The notes below the pieces were generated by a model. That model was given only the letters and a program-made list of their open reading frames with translations. It did not search any database and was not told where the DNA came from. This document shows, one piece after another, positions 140-44,000 of a stretch of DNA of 64,000 nucleotides. Location: contig NW_002060947.1 of NCBI RefSeq assembly GCF_000150275.1, positions 2,283,740 through 2,347,739 of the forward strand. The letters are read 5' to 3'. The stretch comes from Trichoplax adhaerens. Its lineage: Eukaryota > Animalia > Placozoa. The position numbers were made by a program, and so were the translations under genes. The number at the start of each line of letters is the position of its first letter. Position 1 is the stretch's first letter.

Positions 140-1270
140 CAACAGTACAGTAGTAAGTAAATTAACTACCGTACAGTATTGCAAGATGCAGGAAGAGTAT
201 TCTCGGCCACCGTACAGTGTACTGTACAGTAGTATTTGTACAGTACTACTGGCCACTGTAGTATTTGTACAGTATTTGTGTACTGCATTACAGTACTGTA
301 CACTGTACAGTAGAAGAAGACCTACAGTACAGTACAGTACAGTACTGTACTGTATAGTACTGTAGTGTGTGCTAAGAACTCACGCCAATGAGCGTTGATC
401 ACTGTACTGTACTGACTGTGCACTCTACTGTACTGTACACTGTACACTGTACAGTAGATCACTATCATTTTGATAGAGTACAGCAGGTCATTTTCTGTGA
501 TCTCGGTGTCATCTAGATTTCTTACCGGCTGGGATTTCTATTCGCCCTTATCCTTTGTCGCATTAATAACCTTACCGTATAGTATCCGGACCAACTTGGA
601 AGAAGTATCCTAAAGAAAGAAGCTTATTTATTAATTAATGTCCCGTCGCGCTCATGATACTTCGCATACTGTAAATTCAATCAGTACTTACTACAATATT
701 AGACACAGTCATACTGTACTCAGTACAGTATGATTATGAACAGTGCCAATGTACACTTGTACAGTACAGTACAGTACAGTAGTAACAGTCCTAATTGTTC
801 TAATCGCGTATACCTGAGTTTTTTCCTTCTATCTCCTGTTCAGCGATCTATTGTAATCCTGCCATCTTTTACTAATAATTTAGTAAGCTTTGCCATATTT
901 CGATTTACATTTATTCCAACGTAATAATGCTCTACGTAGAAAGTTTTGAATGCCTTGAGGACGGCATTACTGACTGCAAACTCAAACACTGTCACGTTTA
1001 CACACCTATTTACAGTGCTCGCAAGACCATTGATTTTGACTCTAGTGCACGTACAGTACTGTACGTACTGTACTGTAAGACAAACGGGGCACGTACGCAT
1101 TACCGTCTGTAATGACAGGGCATGCACTCTGAACTGTACTACAGTACAGTACAGTATACTGTATGGTCACTACAGCCATGGACTACTGTACTGTACTGTA
1201 CTGTACGTCCCGAGATTTGCAGTACAGTATGTACTGTACAGTACAGTACTGTACTGTAATGTACTGTACG
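140..1270. repeat. TACTG/CAGTA palindromic low-complexity satellite blocks upstream of PHD
   Basis: Dense runs of tactgtacagtacagt at ~140-470, ~700-790 and ~1050-1270; they generate the spurious Y/C/T/V-rich ORFs. Confidence 0.85.
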
Positions 1271-1307
1271 GTACGGCCGATCCTTCACTTTTAATTACGG
1301 TCACGTA
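993..1307 (-). promoter_or_regulatory. Cluster of candidate hypoxia-response elements (RCGTG) upstream of PHD
   Basis: CACGTA (= TACGTG on minus) at 1048-1053, 1090-1095 and 1302-1307, plus CACGT at 993-997, all within ~440 bp of the PHD ATG. Confidence 0.55.
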
Positions 1308-1430
1308 CATTACGTTTTACTTCAGTTCACTGCATTTGGGGTTCGTGCGAGAGCCGAAACAAAAAGAAAAGAAAATGATTTCTTTTTAGGTTAAGAACGT
1401 TCGTCAGTTAGTCAACTTCTTAATTCCTAA

Positions 1431-4597
<3,167 letters not shown>

Positions 4598-7500
4598 TAA
4601 AAATCGCAATACGTAAGCATGGCCTGTACTAAATTTTTATAAAAGTCAAGAGATTTCGTTTTCGGCTCTGAATCTACTAAATCGATAGCGTGGACTATTG
4701 AAGTACTGCCAAAATTATTCTGAATCGTGATTCGAACAAGCACGTGTAACAAAACTGTGAAAGGAAAAAAGCGAATCAGAAATAATTTAAAGCTAATTGT
4801 TATAAAGCTTAAATGAGCACAACAGTAGCTTAAAAATTTTATACTGAATTGTACTATAATTTTCGACAAATTTAAAGTAATGCAGTTAAAAATGAAATAT
4901 TGTACCGTACATACTATCAAATCGTTTAGGTATGAAAGACGGCTTCGAGTACTTGGTATTCGCTTACTTTCAAACTGCTTATTATCGTACTTACATAATA
5001 TAATTATTATTTTAAGAATTTATGAAGTTGCTGAGATTTAAGAAATTCTTAGCAAGTCTTAACGAATTAGCTAAATCAAAACAGGTATTGTCTTATCTAC
5101 AGTCTTTAACATGGTTTAAAATTAGTATAGTATAGCTATGTATTGAATGTACCTGTCAATGATCAGCTATGTTGAATATGATTATACTTGTAAGCATGAT
5201 ACGTTGCGCTATGAAACTAATTCACTGTTGCCTGTATTTTATTGAAAATAGCATATAATAATAGCCATATAGCAATAATAATTGGAATATATACAGTATA
5301 ATGTAAATTCGTATACAGTACTACTACCAAGATGGTTGCTAATGGTAATGTTTATATAGATTTGCCTTCGAATGTATACTTAAAGGTAATATCCTAACAG
5401 ATTTAGACAGTTGTAGAGTTGAAAAGATTTCGAAACTGCAGTGTTAAAGTTTTAAAATTACTAATGGATCTACATTGTATCACCCTTCTGCATACTAAAC
5501 TTTCAGCGTTTATTATTTGATTGATTGCGTGTCTTATGGCTGCTAATAATTTCAATGTAGTGAAATTTCATATTATAACGCGCATACGTGATTAATACTT
5601 TATTTTAGAAGTGCTGCGAACTGAATTTAAAATAAGTTGATACGGCTTACTACTGTCTGCGATAGAGAATGTCCGCAACTGTATTTCATACCGTTTAACT
5701 AATACTTGCAATTGTTTCTAAAATTATGTGATTAGTCATATGCCCGTACTTAATTTGTTACAATTAAAAGCTGTTAATTTAACAGTAAGTTTAGTATTCA
5801 ATTGATTCTACCTATCAAGTAGTGCTATAAATTGCCATCTAGTATCAGTTTCGGCCCGGCCCGCCCGACACTGAATTAAACCAAACACCCACAGAAAGGT
5901 TTAGTGTCAAAACTTGTAACCGTCCTCAATAGTCGTTCAACGGAAATGAGTCATGCGTACTGTAAATTTGCTTTCCGAGCGTACTTGTAGCATGTTTCCA
6001 AGTACATTATGTAATTTTCATGAGTTATTAATAACAGTTTTATTAATTAATGGTCAACATACGAGTATGATGAATGTAATCTATCACATGTATTGTATAT
6101 ACTGTATATGGCACAAGTTTGATCCAAATATAGTTATAAACAAACTGCAGGTTTCTTTTCCATAGAAAGATATTAGTTATTCTCACAAAATATGAAGGTC
6201 TGATCTTTAATATTCATGATATAACGCAACCGTAAAGGTTCACTACAGATTTTAATGAAGTAAACAGTTATCAAGCATGAGATTTAAAATAGGTTTAGTT
6301 ATGAACTACGTTAAACTAGGTTTAAGATTGATATCGTTATACCTTGTGAGCATTGAAAAGGACTTTACACAGATTTTGACATAGTGTATAAAAAATCTGC
6401 ACCCTTTTAAATTGTTGCATTATTTTAGCTAATAACGGCTCACAGGAGTGGCCTAGTTTTGGTAATTTAACATTATAATTATTTGTTATTAAACATTGAG
6501 ATGAATATAATAATCGATACTAATAAGACGGCTACTCACGAACGGTATCAATGAAATAGAGAAAAATAGCCGTTTATCAGTATAATGAACAATGCAGGAG
6601 ACGAAAAACTATTCGTTGCCTTATGTTGCACAAAAGTATTTCTACTTTAATGACCTACAACTTCATAATTATTGGCATAACAATTACATACATAGAAGGC
6701 TTATTAATCTTCGTTATAATAAATCTACTGCATCCGAATTATTTAAATCCTAACCACAATATCTATGTAGACAAAAACGTATAAACTAAAATCTAAGAGC
6801 ATTACTTTCTAAAGATTATTATTAGTTTGTAATTTATGCCCACGCAGATCAATCTTCTAATACAAGCAAATATTGTTGGACTTTGAAACACAATTTTATA
6901 CTCAGTATTATTTTACGATCTCAACCCTTATTTTTAGGACGAATCTATATGAAACTCTATCAAGCACAAGGAAAAACATAGATTTTCGTTGTTAATAATT
7001 GAAAATCTTAGTGTTACTTAATATACTCAATGATAGCTTATAATAATATTACTATACTATCAGGGAAATAAAATGACTCAAAAATATCCTAAAGTACAGC
7101 TCAAATTGATAGTATCATCTTTAAAATTATCGATATAAACTTTTATATCGTGACACTTATTAGTATCTACAGTAAGAGCCAAAGTCAATAATGCAACAGC
7201 TGTGATTATTCAATATATATCCAGTTATGATCTTCTATCTGCCCTTTTCTTCGATGTAGCATGCATTTCTTGATATAGAACATGACAAATTGGTTTTTAA
7301 ATTACTTGATGAGTACAAAACTGATCGACGTGTTGCGAGGTGGGCGTTCATGTTGGTTATATGCAGTAATTGATAAGGTCATACAATTAGTGTTCTTATA
7401 TTTTTGGATCCGTTTTAAATCATAACGTACTTAACATATACAAAGAATTAAGCATTAGCAACTAACGAATATGAATTCGTTTCAATCATTATTTTTCCGC

Positions 7501-8211: not shown

Positions 8212-9381
8212 ATGCTAACGAACCGGTTTATCATTTGGATATTATTTCTTGGTATAACGACTGCGCAAAATGTTGCAAAAGGTATTATAACAAAACATTC
8301 TAGAGATATATGCTATTTAATTTATAGCAATAAAATTTTAAGGTACAAGTAGAAACTAGGATAGTATCTTTATCATAAAAATATTTTATGTATTAGGCCA
8401 TGGAAACTTATACAGAAATAACATTAAGGCGCACTATAGGCTAACTAGAATCGAATTAATCTGTACTCTGTTTTCAGATATTGGCTATAATCAGAAATAA
8501 ATAATTATTTTACTTCAGGTAAAGCCCAAATAGGCAATCATAAATCTGTTTTCCTCAAAAATGAAGCCACTAGACCAGAAAGAGATCAACCACCTAGATG
8601 GGGTAGAGATCAGCCAACTAGATGGGGAAGAGATCAACCGCCTAGATGGGGTAGAGATCAGCCACCAAGATGGGGAAGAGATCAACCATCAAGATGGGGA
8701 AGAGATCAACCGCCTAGATGGGGAAGAGATCAACCGCCTAGATGGGGTAGAGATCAACCGCCTAGATGGGGTAGAGATCAGCCACCAAGATGGGGTAGAG
8801 ATCAGCCACCAAGATGGGGTAGAGATCAGCCACCAAGATGGGGTAGAGATCAGCCACCAAGATGGGGTAGAGATCAGCCACCAAGATGGGGTAGAGATCA
8901 ACCACCTAGATGGGGTAGAGATCAGCCACCTAGATGGGGTAGAGATCAGCCACCAAGATGGGGTAGAGATCAGCCACCTAGATGGGGTGGAGATCAATTA
9001 CCTGAAATGGAAAAAAATCACGCTCCACCAAGGTGGGGTAGAGATCAGTATTCATGGTGGAATCAAGAGCAATATCCTAGCAGATGGGGGAGAGAATATT
9101 CTACCCCTGATAATACTGCAGAAAAATTGTTAGATTCTCTCACTCATCAGTCAGAAAATGCGAAAAAGAATAATTTTCAAGAAATCAATAGTGATTCAAA
9201 TAGTGGTAACGAATCAGCTGTCCATCGCCTATTCTCAAATAAGCTAAAGAATCAGAAAGCAAAATCCGACTCAAATAAATTAATGAATAGCTTTTCAGGC
9301 AGTGAGAGTATTTCCAGACCGCGTGAAAAGAGTTTAAAGCGATCAGAAACACTGGACAATATGCGTATAGATTTAATATAG
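8212..9381 (+). CDS. RWamide neuropeptide precursor (~310 aa): signal peptide, 17 tandem DQP[P/T/S]RWG[R/G] units and 2 further RWGR peptides
   Basis: Exon 8212-8281 encodes MLTNRFIIWILFLGITTAQNVAK (signal peptide); phase-1 intron; exon 8519-9381 reads KAQIG...ERDQPPRWGRDQPTRWGR... and continues in frame into the track ORF 9007-9381 (APPRWGR, QYPSRWGR). Gly amide donor followed by monobasic Arg. Confidence 0.93.
8584..8991 (+). repeat. Coding 24-bp tandem repeat x17 (DQPPRWGR)
   Basis: Unit gatcaRccNccWagatgggg(t/a)aga, 408 bp = 17 units; variation is mostly at third codon positions of the DQPPRWGR frame. Confidence 0.95.
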
Positions 9382-16389: not shown

Positions 16390-17752
16390 ATGTATCGATT
16401 ATCATTATGTTGTATAATTATACTTGTTTTATTTGCGAATGAAATTGAGCCTAAGTTTGCCAAACCAAAGGAAGGTAAATTTTATTAGTCCTTTTCGACT
16501 TCGTTCTAAGAAAAATTTGTGTATTGAAAAATGTAGACTTATGAATTTATTATGGTTCAAAAAGCATTGATTAGCCAGTAAAATTCTAGTATTAATATCA
16601 TAAATTTCAGGATAATTGCCTTACAACCGTTGATTTGATTGTATTTATGATTAAAAAATTACCAATAGTAAATAAAAGATGACAAATCTGAAGAACTTCA
16701 TATATGAATATATACTGAATATGTGTGTTAATGCAGATATACCTTGGAATCTACAACGTCGAAGCAATGCTAACAATTTAAAGTCTCGTAGCGATTCTGC
16801 TAAATTATCCAATACGGAACATAAAAAGAAAGACTTGGTTGCTGAAGAGCAATCGCATCCAATATTTGGAAAAGGTTTAGTTAATGAAGGTAGGTGGACA
16901 TTGAATATTTTGTAGATGTAACTTTAAATATTAAACGTTATGATACTCATTATGGTGCTGTATTTTCCTTAATATTTATTCTGCAGATGTATTCATGTAC
17001 ATATCAGCGCAAACGGACAATTTTCATATAGTTGCAATAGCTTATGGCTATACCCTTTTAAGTTAAAGATTATATTTTTATATTTTGCAGCTAAGAAGAC
17101 ATCCAGGAACGAAGCATTGCAATATAATGGTTGGCCTCCATTTCGTCGGGAGGATGAGTCAAAGCAATATAATGGATGGCCTCCATTTCGTCGGGAGGAT
17201 GAATCTAAGCAATATAATGGATGGCCTCCATTTCGGCGAAGTGATGAATTAACACAATACAACGGATGGCCTCCATTCCGTAGAAATGATGGAAAGGAGC
17301 AATACAACGGATGGCCTCCATTTCGTAGGAATGCTGGGATGATGCAATACAATGGATGGCCTCCATTTCGTCGAGATGATGAAAAAATGCAATACAACGG
17401 ATGGCCTCCATTTCGTCGAGAGGATAGAGAAAAACAGTACAACGGATGGCCTCCATTTCGTCGAGATGATGAAGTTATGCAGTATAACGGATGGCCCCCA
17501 TTTCGTCGGAGTGAAGCAGTTCAGTACAATGGATGGCCTCCATTTCGCCGAGACGATCAACAGAACAAGCCCTATAACGGATGGCCTCCATTTCGTCGAG
17601 AAGATCAACAAAACAAGCCATACAATGGGTGGCCTCCATTCCGTCGTGACGATCAACAGAATAAGCCTTACAACGGCTGGCCCCCATTTCGTCGAAACGA
17701 TCAACAGAAAAAGCCTTATAACGGATGGCCTCCCTTTCGTAGAAATAACTAA
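16390..17752 (+). CDS. WPPF neuropeptide precursor (~299 aa): signal peptide and 14 [Q/P]YNGWPPF-RR units
   Basis: Exons 16390-16474 (MYRLSLCCIIILVLFANEIEPK..., signal peptide), 16737-16889 (alternative donor at 16874) and 17091-17752; phase-1 introns. 10 QYNGWPPF and 4 PYNGWPPF copies, each followed by RR and an acidic spacer; no amide-donor Gly. Confidence 0.93.
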
Positions 17753-24984: not shown

Positions 24985-26784
24985 TTTCAAAGTGCCACAT
25001 TGCATAACATAAGTGCATGATACATTAATGGTGCTACACCTATCGGTAGCTTGTAATTTCGAAATGGCTTCTGTAATAATTAATTTTACCCATCTTTCTT
25101 TATTGTACACAGTGTGAAGTGTACGTTTGACATTTTATGTAGTTAGGCCGAACGTTTTCCATCCCAAAGAATAAATTCTTACTAATTAACTACTTTATCA
25201 CCTCCTTGTCATGATAGATCTTTAAAGATATATTAATAGTAATACGTCGTATATGGTATTAGCAGATCTCTATTTATTGTTAATATATTAACAGTCAATA
25301 AAATGTCTAACCTATATGGAGAATGTGTTCGTTATCATTCTATAAGACTTTATCAGTATTCATAAAATATGAGCAAACTCTAATATCTTTGCAATACTGG
25401 GCATACGCAAAATTTCATTCAATTGCTGATGCCAGATAGCCCTCTATAACCCCGTGATGCTATAGTTCAATAGCTTAAAATTCAGGGTTTCTATAACAAC
25501 TCATTGATACGAAGGATTGGTGAAGTATTGTGAAAAAATTGATATGGTATTGCTGTATGTTCCTAATGATAATCGTATTCACTTTACAAAGTTTGGAATA
25601 CGATTTAGAATTAATTATATATAATTATGGATTTGAGAAACGATAAATTGATATATCAATATTGATATATTACAGTTGAACATCACTGTCACCTCATTTA
25701 GTGTTTGAAACTTATTATTATTTTAAAACAATGACCTTATCGATTTGCGGTAGATCAATTATATTTCTATATTGCATCAGCTCATAAATTGGAAAGCCGG
25801 CACACGTGATAGTTTATAATGTTTCACAATAACCTTTACATTTTGCACGTGTAGGTCATTATTCTGCGACGTATTTGCCTGCGTGTGCTACTGTACGGTA
25901 ATGCAAGCAAGAACCTGTATTAAAATATTAGCTACCTCAATTAGATTATAGCACTGCAAGTGTACTGTAAATTGCCGGTATACGGACACACAAAACAAGG
26001 CTACATCTACAGGTTTGGTGCTGACCGTTGCGTTAATGGATCGAAAGTAAAGAATTCTTTTCATATACGTTAAATTAATATTTGCATATGGATTTGCACA
26101 ATCTTTAATCATGGTGTATCATTACTATAAATAACGATATGCAAATCAATTTTACACTAATTAATACTCTTTTCCTTAGTAACTATTTTGTAGAATACGG
26201 TTAAAAACGCTATTTTAGCTAATAAAATTGCATACAATTGAACTTCGTGAATGCCGGATTTTATTAATAGTTGATAGTCTTTGATAGTAGAAGCACCTGG
26301 ATTAGTTCATTCTCAATGCAAATAAATGTTTATAGTGTATCTGATATGCGTATCCTAATATCGATATATTGATTCCTGAACATAGATTTTTAATAATTGA
26401 ATAAGTTAAAGCAAATTAAATGATTTTATGCATCATATGATAATAATTTTTAGAATAGGCAACAATACACAGAAAGATTGTACATACGCGTATGAGTGCA
26501 ATTCTTGCATTTTTAATATTTATTTCATTAATACCTTGCATAGCTATAGGTACGCATGAGGGATTATACATATACTAATGCACCTGACTATATTCACTAC
26601 GTGGTACATGTAACAAGCTATCGCTATTCGCTAAGACTTGTTTAGTATTACTGTACTACTGTGTTGTATTGGTAGGTATTGGTATTCATTTGAAATTAAA
26701 ATGATCATATAGATGATATAAACTTTCTCGGATAATTATAATCAACAGAAAGGAATTTGGAGAGCGCATCTGATGACGTGATTC

Positions 26785-29700
26785 TTAGTACATGAAAAAT
26801 GGATTTACGGGTGCAGAACCTAAAATAGGTGATAGATAATAGTTACAATAAAATATAACACCTATTTTTCAATTGTAAATACTGAATATAACGTAGGCTT
26901 AATAGAATAAGAGTGCGACATTAAGTAATATCGTTATGAATGGGATTAATATTACTCTAATCTATTCTTAAATGCAACGGTATTATTTTCATCATGATAC
27001 AAAAAACAAGGTATTAAATGTAAAACAATTGGGTAACTAAATTAAAATTATTATTGCTAAGAATCTCTACCATCACAGGTGCAGTTGTTACCATCGTTGT
27101 TAGTAGTACCACTATTTTCATGCATGAATTCTGCATTAAATTGAATTAAATGTTATATGTGCATAGTAGTGAGTGAGAATATCTACCATCTCTGCTGTAT
27201 TCAATGTGCATATGTTAGCATGCTGGTTAATGCAACACTAATTCATGCAAAGATTAGTATGAATTAACTTACTGCCTCATTAAGCAGCCAGTCTTATTAA
27301 TCCTTGATCATTTAAATTTAAATGAGTGCAAATTATTAAGATAGTGTCTAAAACTCGTATCTGCCAGACCTTTTAATTTTATTGATACTAGATCGCTACT
27401 ATACCTGCTCTTGGAATTGAATAATATGACGGAGTTTCTATAAAGATTAATTGTTGGGATGATTAGTAAGTAGCCATATGAGATCTTGCTATGATTATAA
27501 CAAAACATAGTTATATACATAAATCATATCGATAATTATAACGCTGTATATCAGTAATATTAGCAATAATACCATGTAATTACGTATAGTATTTTGAATA
27601 TTTTAAGCAATAGAATGAATAATGCAATCCTACTCCCAATAAAATTTTACCGCGGCAACTCGAAAATTCTCTTTTATTGAAGTACATTTGCTTACCTTCT
27701 GCATTGTTACGGAAAAATTGAGCATCTAGGTTGTTTGATATATAATAGAAATCATTAAAACTCTTGCTTAATATTATTATAATCAAATATTGGTATCTAA
27801 TAACATGCAAAATCAGTAGTAAAATACCATTAACAAGACGTAAAGTTACTAGTTACTTTCTTTTAAACAAAGTTATGGATAATTTTATATCATTATTCAG
27901 TGTTACTTATTTGCCGGCGATGTTTTATGACTATTAAAGTCGTTAAATAAATTAGTTGTTATTATGCAATTAATTTTTTAAGACTGCTTTATTAATTATC
28001 TCTTTGAATTTTCTATTTTCTTATACTGAAAGTGTTAGTCTACATCTGATATATAGAATTGTTCATTAATTTGCAATGACTTTACCAAAGTAGATTCTTA
28101 CTAGAGCAATATCACTGTAATAATTTCTGAAGTCAATTGAAAGACATGATGTGAAATTGTTTAAGTAAATTAATAAATGAATTGACAACTGTTTCATTAT
28201 AATTGGGGTAGTATTTACGTCAAGATGAAACAATTTTCACGGTGAGGTTTACAGTATAATTATCGGTAGCTAGCAACACATAATTTATAGCTATTAGGAG
28301 ATTATACGTGATTGTGCTATTCAAATAATATGCTAAAGCACAGTATTGTTAATAAAGTGTTTATAATTATACTTCTTAATAGTAATTTTATTTTCTGACT
28401 TTTACATTATATAGTATGAAAATTTTTTTTATTGTAAATAATGACTGTCTTAGAAGAGGTCTTAGAAATTTAAACTGACCATCTTTCTTGTTCCCGAAGA
28501 ATTGATCATCTAATTTAAGGAAAGAAACAAAACAAAGTTGAAAGTTATCATCGTAATAATCAGCTAAATAACAGCAACATTGTACCCTACTGACGTGAAC
28601 AGACAAAAGTTGCAAATAATAAAGCTGTCATGAAATAATTCTTTTATGCTAATAATAGTGACAAGTTTATTAATTGCACATACCTTCCTTCTTGTGTCCA
28701 AAGAACTGATCATCTAAAATAAGGAAATAATTTTTAATAAAATAATTAGGGTAGTAATAAGAAAAATTGTAGCTTACTGACAAAGTAGATAAAGGAAGGT
28801 AACTGATAGCAATGTAGAATAATAGTTTTCTTTACAGAGATAAGATATTTATAATAGAGCTGTTAAAAGTACAAGGGGAAAGACAACGATAACACTTTCA
28901 GTTTCTCAACATTTCTTCAATTTATAATATAGCTTGGAGATTCTAAGTTTAACAAAAATTATAATACATAGTATTGCAGTCTTTTCGGGTGACTTTATTC
29001 TAGAAGTATTATTTAAATACCGTAATTGCGCAGTCGAATTAAAAATACCTATGCTGGGTCATTCAAGTTCAAGTACATTACGTTGTGGCATAAGTTATGA
29101 CTATGCTAGCACAATCATAGCTCTAAAATCATTATTCATTTTAAGATATAACACGAAAATATTTATGATGTTATATAAGCTCTATTTAGACTGCAATGAT
29201 CTTGGCTGAAATATATACATAAATTTAATTAAATACCTTTTTTGGAGCCAAAAAATTGACCGTCTGAATGTAAAGAGAATAAAATGTCACATATTTCATA
29301 TATTATCAATAAAATTTATTTGGAATAAAGAATTATTTGCATATCATAGCGATAAAATTTATTAATAGAAGTTCTTAGTTCATTATAAGATTGCATTCAA
29401 TTACCGTCTCTACTCCCAAAGAATTGAGCATCTAAGATAAAGAAATTAAGGATTTCGGATATTAATTATCGTGAAAATATTTATTCAAATGCAGGAAGCT
29501 GGTATATACTACGCATGATAATATAACGACATTGCATAACTACATGTATGTACTCTATTTGAATAGAGTTTTAAATCGATGGACTTGTTAAAGTAGTAAC
29601 TAAGTACATAAAATCTACGAACAAAAAGATGGGTATAGAATGATATAAAATATGACGTAGATAGATGTGAACTACAGGACGATATGTTACTGTTGCGATC

Positions 29701-32700
29701 GTGAGAGTTGTACACATTGCAAGTAATGACCTGAGCAATTGTACACATGCAAAGTATAAACAACTGAAATATTATGAACTGGGATAGGGATTGGTGGTCT
29801 AATTTTCTTATAGTAGAAATTTGAACTAAAGCTATAGAATTTAATGGTTTAAGGAGTTATCAAGTTACAAATGATAACTAATCAGTGATTGTATTAATTG
29901 AGAAATTATTTGTCATGATACTGACTTAGAAGATGAAAAGCTTAGTTTCGTAACATCAAACATATGTTAGAACTAATCAGAGCAGTAATATAAGTTTAAT
30001 ATCTGAATCGTACGATCAGTTCTTACCACGTTTGCCGGGGTTAAAAAACTGTCCATCTAGGTTATAAAAGGGTAAGAAATATTGTGAGGTTAACCATATA
30101 TAAGCAAAATTTTGATATATTTAATTTTAACTTGGTAACTTTTCCAACCTCTTCTGCTTCCAAAAAACTGTGCATCTGATTTATCGAAATTGTAATTGAA
30201 TGTTGGGTTAGAAAGGGATTAAATAATTGATTTAATCAGTTTTCATAATCGATCCTGACCTCCTCTACTGCCAAAGAATTGTTCGTCTGCTTTTTAAAAG
30301 GTAAAACTAATTGTTAGACTAGAAGGGATCAAACATTTGATATCAACTCATATAATCTAAGTGAATTTAATGAACTCTGCAACTATAATCGTTTCCTACC
30401 TTTTCCGCTTCTCTGACCAAAAAATTGGGTATCTGAATCGCAAGATTCCGTAAAGTAAACGATATGATCACAGAGAATCACTAAAAATGAAAAAAACCTG
30501 ACAAGTCATTTCATACCTCGTCTTCGGTCAGGACTGAAAAATTGTGTGTCTAATACGAAAATTTGAGAAAGTAGGTATTCATAACATTAGTATCATAGAG
30601 TTGATAATTAAATGCTTGGTAAACGTACTATTTACCGTATCTACGGCCTGGATTGAAAAATTGGGCGTCTAATTTAAAATTGTAGAGGAAAAACGTTATG
30701 TATTGTCTTATGATTAGTCATTATGGGCAAGTTATAATTATTTTGCTATTATTGAGCTATTTCTAATGATTAAAGTATTTATTGTTATGTATTGGTTGCT
30801 TAGTGAGCTTTCCAGGGTTGAAAAACTGACCATCTAGACAGTAAAATGTAAATTACTTATCTTTTTGATAAATGAATGATAGCATCAAACGATGGAAATA
30901 TTATACGCATATAATTATTTGCAAGATAAATACGTGTTTGTTTCATACCACGTTTGCCTGGGTTAAAAAATTGACCATCTAGTTTGTGGAAAACAAAGTT
31001 TGCACAATTTTAAAGATAAAATAATAGCAACAGTAGGCTGTAATATCATTATCGAATAGTATCTGTTCTTTTTCTTACCACGCTTGCCAGGATTGAAGAA
31101 CTGATCATCTAAATTACATAATGTAAAGCACCATATTTATAATTTGGCAAAGGAATAATATTTGTCAAGAATAATTACATGCGCGCATGTGCTTCTTACC
31201 GCGTTTGCCTTTATCGAAAAACTGTCCTTCTAGATTATGTAAAGTAAAGTTCTTACATTATTGGCAATAGAAGTAATACGGTAGTACTTACTGTAAGGAT
31301 GGAATTATCATTATCAAGGATGATAAGACATCTGTTTCTTACCGCGCTTGCCAGGATTGAAAAATTGACCATCTAGATTTTGGGAAATAAATAGTTAATA
31401 TTCTTTGACAAAAGAATAATCTTGTATATGTGACGCAAAAAATTATAATTGTCAAGACTAATTTAGTCTAGTTTCATACCGCGCTTGCCAGGGTTGAAAA
31501 ATTGATTATCTAGATTTTGGAAAATAAAATTATACACGTGACGAACGAATAATGATGTCTAATGATGCAATATCATAATCCGAATAATTATCTATTTTTT
31601 TACCGTATTTGCGGGAATGGAAAAACTGGTCATCTAGATTATAGAAAGTAAAATACTCAAATCATTAAAGAAGGATGAGCACCTTCCAATAATAGAAATA
31701 TCAAAATCAAGGTTAAATATATTCTGTTTACTACCGCGTTTGCCAGGATTGAAGAACTGACCATCTAGATTTTAGAAAGTAAAGTCTGAATCATACTTTA
31801 TGATGAAGCATTAATGGTATCGAATCGTAGAAATATCAATGTTAAGAATGGTTATATTATACATTTATTTCTTACCGCGTCTACCAGGATTGAAAAACTG
31901 ATCGTCTAGATTATAGAAGTAAAGCAATTACTTTTTTAATAAAGAAATGAAAGTATTCAACGATAAATGTATTATTATTAAGAAAGCATTATGTAGCTAT
32001 TTCTTACCGCGTTTACCAGGATTGAAAAACTGACCATCTAGATTGTAAAAGTAAAGCATATACTTTTTTAACGAAGGAATGAAAGTATTTAACGATAAAT
32101 GTATTATTATTGAGAAAGCATTATATAACTTTTTCTTACCGCGTTTACCAGGATTGAAAAATTGACCATCTAGATAGTATAAGTAAAGCATTTACTTTTT
32201 TAACGAAGAAATGAAAGTATTTATCGATGAATGTATTATTATTAAGAAAGCATTATATAACTATTTCTTACCGCGTTTACCAGGATTGAAAAATTGACCA
32301 TCTAGATAGTATAAGTAAAGCACTTACATTTTTTAACGAAAACATAAAGGTATGTGACGATAAAAATATCATTACTGAGAAACATTGTATAGTTTATTTC
32401 TTACCGCGTTTACCAGGATTGAAAAATTGACCATCTAGATTATTAAAGTAAAACGTTTACTTTTTAGCGAAGAAATGAAAGTATGTAGCGATAAATGCAT
32501 TATTGAGAAAGTATTATTATATAACTATTTCTTACCGCGTTTACCAGGATTAAAAAACTGATCATCTAGATTATTAAAGTAAAGCATTTACTTTTTTAGC
32601 GAAGAAATGAAAGTATGTAACGATAAATGCATTATTGAGAAAGTATTATTATATAACTATTTCTTACCGCGTTTACCAGGATTAAAAAATTGATCATCTA

Positions 32701-35294
32701 GATTATTAAAGTAAAGCATTTACTTTTTTAGCGAAGAAATGAAAATATGTAACGATAAATGCATTATTAAGAAAGTATTATTATATAACTATTTCTTACC
32801 GCGTTTACCAGGATTAAAAAACTGATCATCTAGATTATTAAAGTAAAGGATTTACATTTTTGACGAAAAAATGAAAGTATGTAACAATAACATCATCATT
32901 ACTGAGAAAACATTATATAACTATTTCTTACCGCGTTTACCAGGATTAAAAAACTGATCATCTAGATTATTAAAGTAAAATATTTACATTTTTGACGAAA
33001 AATTGAAAGTACGTAACTACAACAATATCATTACTGAGAAAACGTAATATAATTATTTCTTACCGCGTTTACCAGGATTGAAAAACTGATCATCTAGATT
33101 ATAAGAGTAAAGCATTTACTTTTTTGACGAAAAAATGAAGTATGCAACGATAAAAATATCACTATTGAGAAAACACTGTGCAACTACTTCTTACCGCGTT
33201 TATCAGGGTTGAAAAACTGATCATCTAGATAGTATAAGTAAAGCATTTTACTTTTGACGAAAAAATGAAGGTACGTAACTATAAAAATATCACTGATGAG
33301 AAAACATTATACAACAATTTCTTACCGCGTTTACCAGGGTTGAAAAACTGATCATCTAGATCGTATAAGTAAAGCACTTACATCTTTAGCAAAGGAATAA
33401 TACTATTTGGCAATATAATTATAAAACTATCGTTTCATGAATCATATGTAAGAAAATACATAATTATGTTTTAAGAATAGATAACAGCAAATTGATAATA
33501 TAGTACTTTAGTGAAGTGCGTCGTTTATCCGTGCATTCAGCATTAGATTGAAAATTTAATCTCTAATTCGCAAAACTAACTTTTAAAGCTACGGCTTATG
33601 TATGACGAAAGCTTTATCTAAACACCTAAATTCGACTTAAATCTAAATGCGAAACATTCGAATTGAAATTATCTAAGTAAAGCCACTAAGATGAATTTGT
33701 TACTTTGCTCTTTTTTTTTCCAGAAAATTGAATATAGAGTAGTATACAAGAAATAGATTATATTAAGGAAATTCCGTTGCGGTAAAACATTTTTGGCTCT
33801 ATAGATTTAATAACTATATTTTATGAATGATTATAAATTATGTTTAAGTTGTTTTTATTGTTTAGAAATTTGGTAGAAGTAGTCACTACTGTATTTAGTA
33901 ATCTACTAAATTTATCTACAATTTATTATCGAATGTAAATAAAATTTAATTACAAAATTAGTATTGACATCATACCTTTTTTTTGTAGGTTGTCTTCTAG
34001 AGAATGGAAAATAATTCATTATTAGAGACGATTAGTACTGCATTAACTAAAGTGGTTAAGTTACTTTATAAGTGTCACTTAATATTAGCTAAAGTATGGC
34101 GCTAGTAATTATTACATAATAGTCAAATACGGCAATACTTGTGGAGATAAGACATAAAGTGTCATTATAATATGATTTACTGTAGCTATTATTGTCTTGA
34201 ACAATTACAGAACAACCGCGTATAAGCTGTGATCACCAATTGATCTACGTATGGTCGTGTAAAAGAGATATGTATAGCACTGCTTCCGCAGAATTTTAAA
34301 TAATAGATAATTCTAACACAATTTGTGCACTTATCCAATTAAGAACGAATACGTACTATTTTACTATCTCGAAACTCATTAATTTGAAATAGTATGGTAC
34401 TTTCTTAACTTTATCGCAGATTACTAACTTTTATGGCCAGTAAATCGATCGTTACAGAAATTATTGCAATTAGGTACAATTTTTTGTACCATACTTCTAG
34501 ATTGGAAGTATTAACATAGCGCAAGCAAAAGAAGCTTCAAGAGTAGAAATACAGTAACTTTGTCGGATATCGAATTGGATGCTCTGTTAGTTCGGAGTTA
34601 CAAGTAAGCGCTTACCATCGCAACTATTCTTTTTCTATGAATCCAAGTATTGTAATGATAACTAATCATCTACAGATTTAGTAGAGTGAAAGAGCTATGG
34701 CATTTGGTGCCATTTATAAATTTAATTTGATGATATGCAAACTAATCAGAAAATGCGCATTCTAACAACATACATATTTACGTATTGTCCATATGTTTTA
34801 TCGGATTATGAATTATGGAGGAAAGGGATGATTCACAAAGGTGAATATCGACAATACGATAGCAAACTGGATACAAAATAAATATCGATCATTTTGCTTA
34901 CCGGATCTAGCAACCTTTACGGCTTTTGAGGCATCTAATTTCACGGATGAATTAGTAATAACTACTTTAACGCGCATGTTTCGAAATTCATTAAATTTAA
35001 AGTTATGCCAAAATTAAAAAATAAGCATCGTTTGTACCTTCAGCTTCCTTTTTAAAGAAAGGATTAAATTGTCTCTTGTTAGTTTCTGCTTTACTATCTG
35101 ATTCGTCTACGTTTTAAATTTTCGTTCAAAATGCAATTTTATAAGTCGTTATGTTGATTTTAAGTTATTGTTATATCGAAAGAAATATGTGCAATTTAGT
35201 TTAAAAAATGGTAACAAATAGAGATATTACCTTTAGCTGCGATGATAAGAGGCAAGGCCACGGAGGCGACAAGCAATATGAAAAGGGTTTTCAT
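26785..35294 (-). CDS. FFNPamide neuropeptide precursor (~403 aa), ~37 coding exons, one peptide per micro-exon
   Basis: Signal exon 35294-35231 (MKTLFILLVASVALPLIIAAK); 35106-35038 (..KRQFNPFFKK..); 34934-34902; 33996-33976. Then 30 intact QFF micro-exons with low coordinates 33326, 33195, 33064, 32932, 32800, 32668, 32536, 32405, 32272, 32140, 32008, 31876, 31735, 31604, 31480, 31343, 31200, 31079, 30949, 30636, 30517, 30400, 30260, 30149, 30027, 29405, 29237, 28684, 28480, 27696. Then 27437-27405, 27130-27071 and terminal 26819-26785 (GSAPVNPFFMY*). Every internal exon is YAG|3n nt|GT in phase 1. The non-repeat linker and tail exons are less certain than the QFF exons. Confidence 0.88.
30027..33360 (-). 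repeat. Tandem array of exon+intron units (~111-168 bp; 131-133 bp in the young core 31876-33355)
   Basis: Conserved core cttaccgcgtttaccaggattgaaaaactgatcatctaga recurs 26 times in this span. The intervening intron sequence is also homologous in the core and nearly identical across 32405-32830. Confidence 0.95.
30804..30833 (-). pseudogene. Dead FFNP micro-exon (pseudo-exon) with destroyed 5' splice site
   Basis: Acceptor intact (tag|ATGGTCAGTTTTTCAACCCTGGAAAGCTCA = DGQFFNPGKL), but the donor reads ctaag instead of gtaag and KR has become KL. Confidence 0.7.
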
Positions 35295-40530: not shown

Positions 40531-41075
40531 TAGATAAAATGAAATGTTTATTACCATGGAAACAGATGCTGTAGCCTGTAAACCTGTAAATCTTTTGGTC
40601 TTCATGTTATGCATGTTCATTTTGTATTTATAGTACTGTCTAGTAAATGATACGATATATATATAACGTAATCTAACGAATGATAGTCTATTGCATTCGA
40701 AACAACCGTGTCTCAGTCTTATTAGCTATAAATTGGTTACCACTGCAATATTTGGCGAATTAAACCCAGGTACTGGTTGCAAAAGTGACTAAAAATTATA
40801 AATTTTAAAATTTGATCACATAAATAGAAGAGTTGATCATATTAGCGTAATGCAGCGTATTAAAATTTGCCATATAGTAGATATAGTATACACGAATTTG
40901 ATTATAAGTTTGTATAGTAAATACAGTAATTATTTTAGTATCAACACTAAAAGATCTGCAGTAAATGCCATGAGTGTAACTATAAGTAATCACTGTCAGT
41001 TTAAAACTAAATTTAGTTTATGACTTACGATTTTGCAATTATGATTTCATGTCTTTCTCATATTCCGTAGGTAAT

Positions 41076-44000
41076 ATGGCATCGAAGGATACCTCATCAG
41101 ATCATGATGATCAAGAACGAAACGATTTAAATAAAGATCCTGATGCGGAAAGTGAGAATCTTCGCAGCGAAATAGTCGTTAAAGCTGAAGTGAATACAAT
41201 AAACAAGAGTGAAAAAGATTTTGAACGCTCGCAAGAAAATGTTATCCACCCATTGGACAACGATCAACAAATAGCATACAAAAAAGAATCAGACATTTTC
41301 CAGATCGACCTTACTACTCAAACACAACAAACTGACATGAATCAGTCAGAAAATGATAACGATGCTGATGATGTTGATGCTTTAACAAGTAACGGTGATG
41401 TGACTATTAATCAGTCAGATGATGAAGATGAGTATAAGTCACATTCTGGTGGAAGTAGCAATGATAATGATAATATTCTAATCGATAATGAGCCAAAAAC
41501 AGAAAGCATACCTGCAGATGTTCAATCATTAGTAAAAGACAGTAATCTTTCGCCTGGAGAATTGGATCCAGTTGGCGAAAGCTCTGCAGCTGGCGAGGCA
41601 GTAAAAAATGATCAAATTATCAAAGATGCAGATTCTGTTCAGCAACGAGAACTAAAAGAATTAGATCACTCAACGAAGAATGAAAATCTTGTTATCGGCG
41701 ATACAGTAAACCAAGACGAAACTACGAGTGTTAACATAATTTCAGAGGACTTAAATCAAGATACTTCAATTAATGCGACTGACGATAAACTTCCAGTGAC
41801 CACAAATAGCAACATATCCGCCAATGTAAGTTCTTCTTTGACTGATAAAAAAGTCATGGAAACAAATACTGCAGATAATGCCAATGATAGCAAAGATAGT
41901 AGGCAAATTGATAGACACGATCTAGAAAAGTTAGATCACCAAAGCGAAGGAACAAAGGAGATTGAACTCGACGCAGCTGTGACTAATGGTAAGTGAGGCT
42001 TGTTTGTTGGGTTGATGTCTTCATTATCTTGATTTCTTGAATTATTCTACTATAATTATGGTCTTTACAATACGTTATAGTTGTATGCTTTATCCAACCT
42101 GAAAATCAGCAAGTTGCAATTGGTGTACTCAGTACTTTTACGGCCGTTGCTGAGATTAAGAATGCTGTTGAAATAAAGACAAAGATTGATTCTAACCGCA
42201 TGACCTTTTTTATTCAAGGTTTCATTTCTTAACTACACACGCGATGATAATCATGCCGGAATACTTGTGCTTTATATACTAAAACACCTTTAATTTATAG
42301 ATGTATCCTATACTGATGATGTCAAGCTTTGTGATATGAATGTTACTATTGGCAATGCGTTACATTGTGACATACGCATAGACTATGTACCAACTAGAGC
42401 TCTAGAGTTTGTTATGCCTGACGTGTTAGAAGTAAAAATTAAAAATGGTAATCTGCCTTAGATATTTACTAATATTGATAACTATAGCAATAGATTCTTG
42501 TTCATTTTAAAGGTTATTGCTCATAATAATTTTGTAAATAGATGACGTCGATGACGTTGCTGTGAAAGTTCATATCCAGAAGTGCGCAAACTGTAAACCT
42601 TACCTGGGTGGATACAGAAGCCGTAAAACTGGTAAAGAATACCATCATGCTTCCATGCAAACGCGCCCTAAGCCTATTAAAGACAATGGGGTAAAATAAA
42701 GTTTTGTTACCGTTTAGCATTGCGCTAGTTTGGCTTGAAACTAAAATGATCTTCAAATAATTAGATTGTCAAGTACCATAGAGAAACCCAAACCGTAAAA
42801 TCAAAAAACAAGTTTCAGCAGTCTACTAACGATACTGCGACACAAATGGTAAAATAGAATCTTTGCTTTGTTTATACTACTCGATTGAGTTTGATTGTAT
42901 ATAGCAGATTTCAATAGTCACTTTGATTGTTAGTAGGACACTTTATGAACCCGTCAATTTGATCATCATAGTAGACCATTTCTGTTCTTGCCTAATTTTC
43001 AACTATTTTGATAGACTACTGGTGGAACATATGTGGCAAATCTAACCGACAAATTAATTGCCCCTGGTAAATATTTAGAGGCAGATGTTTATCTTGAGAA
43101 TAGATTACGCAAGGTAACCTTTGATCGTTATCAATACAATTACTTGAATACTAGGTAGGGTGCTTTACTGATTGATAGTATATCCTTATATTTTAGATAA
43201 TTACCTTACAATCATATATAAGGAGGTGGTTAGCCAAAAACTACGTCAACATGATTCGAGCTCAAAGAGATACAAGGTTGGAATGGGAAAGGCAAGAAAT
43301 TGAGAGAAAGAAATCAGAAAAGGAGGAAAGAATTCAACGAGAGTTACAACGTCGCACTAATCCGCGCACGAAGGAAGATTTTGATCTTTTATACTGTGCT
43401 CTTGAGAGTAAGTTTGCAATGTCTTGTGTATACAATTTACTTTAAGTTTGAAAACAAGCTCATATATTTTCAAAGTGAAAAGTAGTCATGCGTTATCAAT
43501 TTCATAAGTGATATTAATAACAAATTAACAATAGAATGGCGTCAGGAGGAAATGTCTATAATTAACAAGAACAAAACTGGAGCTCAACGTAAGGCAGCTT
43601 TGGCTGCCTTGCTAGAACAAGAAACTCATCTAATAGCTTCTATTGATCAGCATAAAATTATTGCTGAACAAAACAATAGAGAGAGAAATACTCGTAAATT
43701 CTTAGATAAGGTAGAAAATGTACTATTGAGAAAGATCAATGAGGATTATCTTAATATTATTTAATTGACATGCGATTCATGTTAGGCTGCCGATGCTAAA
43801 AGGTGGATATCAGTTGATGGTAAGGTAACGGAAATGGATACGGCTTATACCATTCGAGCCAAGCAATTGCGGGACTTATATACTAGTATTGTCATGAAAT
43901 ACTTAACACAAGAAGAACGACTTGATGTTTTAATGACTTTAAAGCATACAGTTAAGGTTAGGCTAATTATTAATGTGAAAAAGCTATTTTTTATCATTGG

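Follow-up and report, generated by a model that had tools for sequence, protein, structure and literature searches.

Structure of the locus

The window, that is, the whole 64,000-nucleotide stretch of Trichoplax adhaerens DNA that we analysed, carries on its minus strand, from 35294 to 26785, a 36-exon gene with a coding sequence of 1152 nt. The gene opens with a signal-peptide exon and three short exons for the N-terminal part, continues with 30 micro-exons and closes with a 33-nt exon and a short exon that completes the coding sequence. The 30 QFF micro-exons, found by a mechanical minus-strand scan for phase-1 segments between AG and GT, followed by curation, run from 33355 down to 27696; each encodes one [D/E]-x-QFF...-basic unit, and they measure 30 nt (n = 23), 27 nt (n = 4) or 33 nt (n = 3). 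A preliminary description of this DNA had counted 31 micro-exons, 30 of them intact, which corresponds to these 30 plus a donor-less unit at 30836-30807; the coordinate 26785 that it gave as the start is the end of the stop codon. Its claim that all introns are in phase 1 and all internal exons are multiples of three was borne out at 35/35 introns and 34/34 internal exons, so that any subset of exons stays in frame, and the in-frame skipping that it considered possible follows from the sequence. The acceptor of the micro-exons is most often tctag/AT (15/30) and the donor G/gtaag (17/30). The split codon, said to give Asp or Glu always, does so (GAT, GAC or GAA) at all 30 micro-exons, exons 2-4 and exon 35, and fails only at the last junction, where it gives Gly. 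QFFNPG[KR]R is encoded by 18 units, as had been counted before (16 GKR and two GRR).

Splicing was assessed with assembled RNA contigs from four studies (runs X5, X6, X8 and X11), which drop rare variants, over the stretch from exon 16 downstream, chosen to avoid the tandem block. The exons are as follows, with the contig joints and published MS peptides that touch them.

35231-35294 (-), exon 1: ATG and signal peptide MKTLFILLVASVALPLIIAAK, 64 nt, phase-1 end; the published table tags the gene 'wSP'
35038-35106 (-), exon 2: 69 nt, DESDSKAETNKR-QFNPFFKK-EAE; MS pyroGlu-QFNPFFKK; EAEDASKAVKVA crosses the exon 2/3 junction
34902-34934 (-), exon 3: 33 nt, DASKAVKVARS; MS EDASKAVKVA and EAEDASKAVKVA
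33977-33997 (-), exon 4: 21 nt, EDNLQKK; basis sequence
33326-33355 (-), micro-exon 5: DDQFFNPGKR; scan; included in the unit-count match to the H2 model
33195-33224 (-), micro-exon 6: DDQFFNPDKR, without amidation signal because Gly is replaced by Asp; scan; required by the published counts 18 and 19
33064-33093 (-), micro-exon 7: DDQFFNPGKR; scan
32932-32961 (-), micro-exon 8: DDQFFNPGKR; scan
32800-32829 (-), micro-exon 9: DDQFFNPGKR; scan
32668-32697 (-), micro-exon 10: DDQFFNPGKR; scan
32536-32565 (-), micro-exon 11: DDQFFNPGKR; scan
32405-32434 (-), micro-exon 12: DGQFFNPGKR; scan
32272-32301 (-), micro-exon 13: DGQFFNPGKR; scan
32140-32169 (-), micro-exon 14: DGQFFNPGKR; scan
32008-32037 (-), micro-exon 15: DGQFFNPGKR; scan
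31876-31905 (-), micro-exon 16: DDQFFNPGRR; abuts exon 17 in contigs of X6, X8, X11
31735-31764 (-), micro-exon 17: DGQFFNPGKR; joint 31633/31735, 4 runs
31604-31633 (-), micro-exon 18: DDQFFHSRKY; joints on both sides, 4 runs
31480-31509 (-), micro-exon 19: DNQFFNPGKR; joints on both sides, 4 runs
31343-31372 (-), micro-exon 20: DGQFFNPGKR; joint 31372/31480, 4 runs
31200-31229 (-), micro-exon 21: EGQFFDKGKR; contig loose ends to exon 22; MS EGQFFDK-amide
31079-31108 (-), micro-exon 22: DDQFFNPGKR; contig loose ends to exons 21 and 23
30949-30978 (-), micro-exon 23: DGQFFNPGKR, last unit ahead of the 280-nt intron; joint 30668/30949 in X6, X5, X8
30636-30668 (-), micro-exon 24: 33 nt, DAQFFNPGRRY; joints on both sides
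30517-30549 (-), micro-exon 25: 33 nt, DTQFFSPDRRR; joints on both sides, 4 runs
30400-30432 (-), micro-exon 26: 33 nt, DTQFFGQRSGK; joint 30432/30517, 4 runs
30260-30286 (-), micro-exon 27: 27 nt, DEQFFGSRG; joint 30175/30260, 4 runs; upstream joint absent among those listed
30149-30175 (-), micro-exon 28: 27 nt, DAQFFGSRR; joints on both sides, 4 runs
30027-30056 (-), micro-exon 29: DGQFFNPGKR; joints on both sides, 4 runs
29405-29431 (-), micro-exon 30: 27 nt, DAQFFGSRD; joints on both sides, 4 runs
29237-29263 (-), micro-exon 31: 27 nt, DGQFFGSKK; joints on both sides, 4 runs
28684-28713 (-), micro-exon 32: DDQFFGHKKE; joints on both sides, 4 runs
28480-28509 (-), micro-exon 33: DDQFFGNKKD; joints on both sides, 4 runs; MS pyroGlu-QFFGNKKD
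27696-27725 (-), micro-exon 34: DAQFFRNNAE; joints on both sides, 4 runs; MS FRNNAEETPSY crosses into exon 35
27405-27437 (-), exon 35: 33 nt, ETPSYYSIPRA; joints 27437/27696 and 26817/27403 (cut +2), 4 runs; MS TPSYYSIPR
26785-26819 (-), last exon, coding part: GSAPVNPFFMY and stop
30807-30836 (-), dead micro-exon within intron 23: ctag/DGQFFNPGK..., donor lost

The 3' UTR extends below 26785, with RNA contigs from 26817 to <26700 at depth 530-5750. At micro-exon 27, a tandem acceptor (aag/cag) would also permit a start at 30289.

Two further precursors lie in the same 27-kb cluster, RWamide (about 8560-9380, 19 units) and WPPF (17117-17752, 14 units). Like the FFNPamide gene, they carry many peptide copies between basic sites and belong to a class of cell-type-specific peptidergic genes, but each keeps all its repeats in one open frame, as had been noted, without the exon-per-peptide arrangement. 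The WPPF neighbour is the same in the published H2 data, where TrispH2_001134 is the WPPF precursor.

Identity with the FFNPamide precursor

The gene is the known Trichoplax FFNPamide precursor, already present in public models, and is not new. FFNPamide had been named as a known placozoan peptide, and this is indeed published: an FFNPamide antibody labels ventral epithelial cells and the synthetic peptide affects behaviour. The expectation that gene callers would miss the gene did not hold, since it exists as Ta-63942/XM_002112788.1 (H1) and TrH2_TrispH2_001136 (H2; orthogroup OG_1189). In the rows of Table S5 of Najle et al. (2023; PMC10580291) considered here, the latter is named 'FFNPamide_precursor', with a fold change of 1131 in peptidergic_gamma cells, and has the MS peptides TPSYYSIPR, NNAEETPSYYSIPR, FRNNAEETPSY, EAEDASKAVKVA, RDGQFFNPG, D[DG]QFFNPGKR, pyroGlu-QFFNPGKR, pyroGlu-QFFGNKKD, pyroGlu-QFNPFFKK and EGQFFDK-amide. 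All of them can be read off exons in the window, several of them across exon junctions. Fully processed pQFFNPamide is absent from the same rows, where only GKR-bearing forms occur.

With one mismatch allowed, the H2 model in these rows matches QFFNPGKR 19 times, DDQFFNPGKR 18 times, DGQFFNPGKR 16 times and RDGQFFNPG 16 times, and the unit counts from our exons are identical, which means that the annotation already contains these exons. Exon 4 alone supplies the K that this model lists before DDQFFNPGKR, an indirect support for that exon. The Tadh model, as given there, has 17 QFFNPGKR-type units vs 19 and no EAEDASKAVKVA; this public model may be incomplete, with a few units missed by the callers.

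Chance is far from explaining the clustering of QFF micro-exons. On the minus strand, these 8.5 kb hold 33 copies of the QFF-coding motif CARTTYTTY vs six in the other 55.5 kb, and the entire plus strand of the window has six. Moreover, a pattern coding for QFFNPG[KR]R gave 18 matches in the 105.6-Mb genome, all within this gene, and its reversed control gave none, showing that the gene is single-copy.

Splicing of the micro-exons

It is evident from the RNA contigs that the micro-exons are really spliced together, as the preliminary description had modelled. The 15 best-supported junctions, which are listed above, show CT..AC when read on the plus strand, which is GT..AG on the gene's own strand; 14 of them were found in all four runs and 30668/30949 in three. 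Contig depth at spliced junctions is 371-6183 vs 3-50 for most introns, and published peptides cross junctions as well. Four further junctions are supported by contig loose ends and by exons directly abutting in contigs. Exons 1-15 are probably included as well, judging from splice sites that are intact and almost identical and from the agreement with the H2 counts; for the near-identical exons 5-15 this inclusion is probably constitutive.

The idea that cells regulate the skipping of cassette exons, setting the copy number of FFNPamide and its ratio to the variant QFFG-type peptides, would suit the symmetric phase-1 exons, and the preliminary description had proposed such tuning, by splicing, of both the dose and the mixture of peptides. 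However, all the 15 best-supported junctions from exon 16 downstream in the four studies join neighbour to neighbour, with no exon-skipping junction among them, though contigs drop rare variants. Twelve weaker joints exist besides these, and depth changes in steps along the gene, with contigs breaking at several exons, but such breaks are expected anyway because repeated exons share 31-mers. Skipping among the near-identical exons 5-15 would alter only dose, which is also what Roelants et al. (2013; PMC3731216) concluded for Xenopus genes, where alternative splicing was judged to add dose, not diversity. We therefore find the tuning idea unsupported and regard regulated skipping as improbable.

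Retention of intron 23 was the only isoform signal noticed.

30669-30948 (-), intron 23: 280 nt; retention varies by run

Contigs spanning most or all of 30636-30978 have a depth of 371 in X11 and 98 in X8 (vs 2.5-9 for the intron bins with low depth in these two runs), 50 in X5 and 9.8 in X6, compared with 3-30 for other introns. Splicing is thus not uniform across samples, since retention in X11 amounts to a sizeable share of the adjacent spliced depth. Reading through the intron extends the frame by 30 codons before a stop, so that a regulated switch here would give a truncated precursor stopping after the FFNPamide-rich block. Such a precursor would lack the TPSYYSIPR tail and eleven units at the 3' end, of which ten are variant QFF peptides. 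The X11 contig that retains the intron is normally spliced on its 3' side, and the dead exon sits within the intron. Nevertheless, such a switch seems unlikely to us. In X5 (50 vs about 6000) and X6 (9.8 vs about 600) retention hardly exceeds background, and contig depth measures it only coarsely. It could also reflect a single long intron with a weak donor (gtatga) that is spliced slowly, or a difference between strains, as at 30843 and 30873 the contigs of X5 and X6 do not agree with the window. The premature stop may simply cause the transcript to be degraded.

Growth of the array

31866-33388 (-), young tandem block: 132-bp unit (30-nt exon and about 102-nt intron) repeated 11.6 times; TRF, 87% matches

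The identity among introns is 73-98% for introns 1-11 (5' block), 59-72% for introns 12-18 and 46-68% for later ones; shuffled controls gave 59 +/- 4%, so the 3' introns are at background. Q-F-F is invariant in 30/30 units even though its codons vary (CAG 15 and CAA 15; first Phe TTT 24 and TTC 6; second Phe TTC 18 and TTT 12), and the 16 QFFNPGKR units show synonymous third-position differences at all eight codons. A non-coding tandem repeat or pseudogene, to which the 132-bp repeat by itself could point, has next to no probability, being ruled out by the high-depth spliced RNA contigs and the MS peptides; the invariance of the QFF core despite synonymous change, beside introns decayed to background, speaks against it too.

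We thus prefer, with a probability of about 0.85, a single-copy 36-exon FFNPamide gene whose main transcript has every micro-exon and whose layout is best interpreted as a trace of the gene's growth. The array expanded through tandem duplication of the 132-bp exon-plus-intron unit, probably by unequal crossing-over. Each new copy is in frame owing to the phase 1-1 symmetry, and selection preserves the QFF core as the introns between the units decay.

Counterparts and implications

Comment on the exon-per-peptide, all-phase-1 layout in placozoans was not found in the literature searched, and the preliminary description could not confirm that the architecture had been described; it has described counterparts in hookworm ancylotensin, Xenopus caerulein/magainin and schistosome micro-exon genes (MEGs). 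MEG exons are symmetric, and their variation via exon skipping is said to be documented. Unlike the FFNPamide gene, MEGs have long introns (up to 5 kb) and exons that do not encode one processed peptide each, and homology between them is not expected. Caerulein exons are reportedly 45 bp, with cDNAs of 1, 3 or 4 copies, a variation in exon number of a kind not seen in the FFNPamide contigs. The caerulein/magainin genes of Xenopus laevis likewise have one peptide per repeated exon (Roelants et al., 2013; PMC3731216). Unlike the FFNPamide gene, they encode skin-defence peptides of a vertebrate, contain few repeats and have some exons that are not micro-exons. MEGs resemble the FFNPamide gene in their secreted products and in a signal-peptide exon followed by many exons of 3-81 bp (PMC10526429). 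Similarly, hookworm ancylotensin genes have one peptide per repeated exon, with basic-site flanks and an initial Gln/Glu that becomes pyroGlu (bioRxiv 10.64898/2026.01.24.701534). These nematode peptides are unrelated, and the genes have 10-16 exons vs 36; their exons are homogenised throughout, whereas the FFNPamide gene is young in its 5' block only, and its 3' units have changed into other peptides.

The exon-1 signal peptide would bring the FFNPamide precursor into the secretory pathway, where cleavage would occur at the KR, RR or KK sites ending each exon-encoded unit, the C-terminal Gly would be converted to an amide, and the N-terminal Asp-x dipeptide would be trimmed and the exposed Gln cyclised, probably in this order. 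Given such processing of exon-per-peptide units, one precursor would yield up to 18 pQFFNPamide copies and, besides these, a tail of variant QFF peptides. The layout gives fast evolution of peptide copy number and not, on present evidence, regulated exon choice.

Results

Gene model and exon layout

The FFNPamide precursor gene was modelled by a mechanical scan of the minus strand for segments preceded by AG and followed by GT, open in phase 1 and containing a QFF-like motif, and the result was then curated. The model has 36 exons with a total coding length of 1152 nt, and its parts are as follows (window positions).

35294-35231, minus strand: exon 1, ATG and hydrophobic signal peptide, ending in phase 1
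35106-35038, minus strand: exon 2, 69 nt
34934-34902, minus strand: exon 3, 33 nt
33997-33977, minus strand: exon 4, 21 nt
33355-27696, minus strand: 30 QFF micro-exons (exons 5-34), 23 of 30 nt, four of 27 nt and three of 33 nt
30836-30807, minus strand: dead unit, acceptor good and donor lost
27437-27405, minus strand: exon 35, 33 nt
stop at 26785, minus strand: coding part of the last exon, from the curated model

All 35 introns are in phase 1 and all 34 internal exons (21-69 nt) are multiples of 3. The codon split by the intron is GAT, GAC or GAA at each of the 30 micro-exons, while Gly occurs only at the last junction. The motif QFFNPG[KR]R is encoded by 18 of the 30 units. Exon 1 encodes a putative signal peptide, MKTLFILLVASVALPLIIAAK, which was called by eye. 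The product has the make-up of a secreted prepropeptide, with 30 repeated units, basic cleavage sites and Gly as amide donor, and every repeated exon holds a single peptide with its cleavage site under a uniform intron phase. Symmetric micro-exons hold most of the coding sequence with conventional exons at the ends, as in micro-exon genes. The coordinates, counts and phases of the preliminary description, 30 intact micro-exons and one unit without a donor, were all recovered by the scan and curation, and the gene model is confirmed as correct.

Two details of single units were also noted. In the young block of the array, the unit at 33195-33224 (minus strand) reads QFFNPDKR through a single change of GGT to GAT (Gly to Asp); it would give a non-amidated peptide, and the exon, intact in other respects, seems to have lost its amide donor recently. 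Exon 27 is preceded by a tandem acceptor, aaaaag|cag| (30286-30289, minus strand), whose upstream AG, if used, would add one codon and change the split codon from Asp to Ala.

The array is far from a chance pattern of the region. The QFF-coding motif occurs 33 times on the minus strand within the 8.5 kb of the gene, as against six times on the same strand in the remaining 55.5 kb and six times on the entire plus strand of the window. In the 105.6-Mb assembly, the pattern coding for QFFNPG[KR]R has 18 matches, all 18 of them inside this gene, and the reversed control has none. The pattern QFFNPGKR|gta gave no match in a metagenome scan. No ORF of at least 110 aa is present on either strand at 25-41 kb of the window.

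The gene lies close to two other precursor genes, so that the RWamide, WPPF and FFNPamide precursors all fall within 27 kb of the window.

about 8560-9380, plus strand: RWamide precursor, 19 units in a single frame
17117-17752, plus strand: WPPF precursor, 14 units in one ORF
41049-41996, plus strand: ORF of 315 aa with a high content of Asp, Ser, Asn and Glu, obvious repeats absent

As had been stated from the sequence, both neighbouring precursors keep their repeats in a single frame, whereas the FFNPamide units are spread over 30 micro-exons. TrispH2_001134, the neighbour of the FFNPamide gene in the H2 genome, is likewise listed as the WPPF precursor (PMC10580291).

RNA evidence for splicing

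Logan contigs of four public runs from four studies (X5, X6, X8 and X11), one of which is recorded as RNA, were compared with the stretch 26700-31870, which covers exons 17-36 and lies outside the 132-bp tandem block. All of the best 15 of 27 joints fall at predicted exon borders and read CT..AC on the plus strand, that is, GT..AG on the gene strand; all four runs share 14 of these 15, and three runs share the other one. Contig depth at the listed joints is 371-6183, as against 3-50 for most intron contigs. Four extra junctions, including 30978|31079, 31108|31200 and exon 17|exon 16, are backed by loose ends and the between-letters table, and the same table places exon 35 as an internal exon joined to the last exon at 26819. 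The splicing of the micro-exons into RNA, which had been predicted from the sequence, is thereby borne out for exons 17-36 in four studies by the best 15 of 27 joints.

One joint seemed to go back from 31765 to 31343, as if the exons were re-ordered. We rejected this reading, because the letters between the two parts are those of exon 16, which lies just past the compared stretch, and the exon after it was assigned to the most similar one within that stretch.

Identity with the published gene and peptides

Table S5 of Najle et al. 2023 (PMC10580291) names TrH2_TrispH2_001136 as 'FFNPamide_precursor', marks it 'wSP_nTM' and gives a fold change of 1131 in peptidergic_gamma. All of the MS peptides in the rows compared from this table can be read from the window exons, and several of them cross exon junctions: EAEDASKAVKVA crosses exons 2|3, FRNNAEETPSY and NNAEETPSYYSIPR cross exons 34|35, and RDGQFFNPG crosses a junction between two units (PMC10580291). 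The modified forms pyroGlu-QFFNPGKR, pyroGlu-QFFGNKKD, pyroGlu-QFNPFFKK and EGQFFDK-amide are also reported there, and these published processed peptides map to window exons; mature pQFFNPamide is not among the Table S5 rows compared. TPSYYSIPR, ASKAVKVA and QFNPFF occur once each in the window, within exons of the model. In the rows compared, both the unique non-repeat peptides and the repeat composition agree with the published model, which places the gene in the FFNPamide orthogroup OG_1189.

The match count of Table S5 is the number of places in a gene model that fit a peptide with at most one mismatch. For QFFNPGKR, DDQFFNPGKR, DGQFFNPGKR and RDGQFFNPG, the counts are 19, 18, 16 and 16 in the H2 model and 17, 16, 14 and 15 in the Tadh (H1) model, which is without EAEDASKAVKVA (PMC10580291). 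The window exons, counted in the same way, give 19, 18, 16 and 16. Since these equal the counts of the H2 model, that public model already has this micro-exon set, and the expectation that annotation would miss the gene was mistaken, at least in the case of H2. As the Tadh model is two QFFNPGKR-type units short and lacks EAEDASKAVKVA, it is probably incomplete, or its array differs slightly; the shortfall (17 against 19) suggests either an incomplete H1 model or a small haplotype difference in copy number.

The peptide itself is known from placozoans, as the preliminary description had stated. Apart from the precursor entry in Table S5, Mayorova et al. 2025 localised expressing cells by in situ hybridisation and gave the H1 gene as Ta-63942/XM_002112788.1, Varoqueaux et al. 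used an antibody against FFNPamide and found effects of the synthetic peptide on behaviour, and Senatore et al. included it among custom synthetic peptides. The gene, the peptide and the gene models are already public.

Origin and selection of the array

Tandem Repeats Finder detected a 132-bp unit in 11.6 copies at 31866-33388, which corresponds to a 30-nt exon plus an intron of about 102 nt. Pairwise identity is 73-98% among introns 1-11, 59-72% among introns 12-18 and 46-68% among later introns, while shuffled intron controls gave 59 +/- 4% with a maximum of 68%. The 132-bp period and the intron identity relate these exon plus intron units through recent duplication or homogenisation, and the fall of identity to background from 5' to 3' indicates that the 5' end of the array is young and the 3' end old.

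Q-F-F does not vary across the 30 units, although Gln is encoded equally by CAG and CAA (15 each) and both Phe codons are variable. Among the 16 QFFNPGKR units, synonymous third-position variation was found at all eight codons. Together with the decay of the introns, the invariant QFF and the synonymous changes form a sequence signature of selection on each peptide, which would have acted while the introns decayed. The most economical mechanism would be repeated unequal crossing-over of exon plus intron units, and the phase 1-1 symmetry would make every product of such crossing-over viable. The array is probably tolerable because its introns are short (most 84-113 nt), which lets splice sites pair across the intron.

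Intron 23 and alternative splicing

The symmetry of the exons had led to the proposal that splicing tunes the peptide mixture by combination. None of the best 15 of 27 joints skips an exon, in whichever of the four studies they occur; the joints come from contigs, which miss rare forms, and the proposal is unsupported, as an absence of evidence only.

A single sign of an isoform was found, at intron 23 (30948-30669, 280 nt), which contains the dead unit: unspliced contigs on it have a depth of 371 in X11, 98 in X8, 50 in X5 and 9.8 in X6, as against about 2-31 for the low-depth intron bins of the same four runs. Those of X11, X8 and X5 reach wholly or partly into both flanking exons, and that of X11 runs on, properly spliced, to exons 25 and 26. 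On translation, read-through of intron 23 supplies 30 further codons before a stop; judged from the sequence, retention would leave the precursor short of the eleven 3' units, ten variants among them. Regulation, slow splicing or a difference of strain could each account for this retention; the intron-23 contigs of X11 and X8 are identical to the window, while two substitutions, A>G at 30843 and T>C at 30873, are present in those of X5 and X6.

The last intron (27046-27402) also has RNA contigs, at 27069-27134 in X8 (depth 167), at 27271-27402 in X5 (depth 87) and in the bin 27046-27218 of X6 (depth 146). They partly mismatch the window and may represent either retention or an alternative 3' exon. 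If intron 35 were read through, the protein would end in ...SIPRAGIVAI.

That splicing, besides transcription, sets the peptide output of FFNPamide cells, either by skipping of micro-exons or by run-dependent retention of intron 23, with one peptide per micro-exon as a possible general plan for placozoan secreted peptides, we regard as unlikely (probability roughly 0.15). If it were true, retention of intron 23 would make the cells produce a truncated precursor rich in FFNPamide in place of the full mixture.

Discussion

The FFNPamide gene is itself known and belongs to a known kind of architecture, of which it is a striking and well-evidenced case. Hookworm ancylotensin genes consist of 10-16 exons, each of which from the second onward encodes one peptide, and all their introns are in phase 1, short and uniform (bioRxiv 10.64898/2026.01.24.701534); in Xenopus caerulein/magainin genes the peptide-encoding exons stand in tandem repeat, which has been ascribed to unequal crossing-over (PMC3731216). 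Schistosome micro-exon genes, as outlined in PMC10526429, share with the FFNPamide gene the plan of a signal exon followed by micro-exons. Micro-exon genes of that type vary their proteins by exon skipping; for the FFNPamide gene, the best 15 of 27 contig joints include none that skips an exon. Sequence homology to micro-exon gene families is not expected. Our literature search found no paper on placozoan nuclear micro-exon neuropeptide genes and none that draws attention to this layout in placozoans, although Nikitin 2015 or Jekely 2013 might mention exon structure; the architecture itself has close counterparts elsewhere.

Exons of 30 nt can be dropped by short-read aligners and by homology-based annotation. 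Because of this, quoted precursor copy numbers may differ by annotation, as the 17 and 19 units of the two public models suggest. Since the gene, peptide and models are public, what is gained here is description, unless splicing proves to be regulated.

With its phase-1, one-peptide-per-exon solution, the FFNPamide gene joins the hookworm and frog genes, apparently independently. Moreover, a single locus keeps young, middle-aged and old exon plus intron copies together with one dead copy, and with this mixture of ages the locus illustrates cleanly how peptide cassettes evolve by birth and death. Antibody, in situ, proteomic and behavioural data exist for few placozoan signalling peptides; FFNPamide is one of these, and its gene is for this reason a good test case for the expansion of peptide precursors in an animal without neurons.
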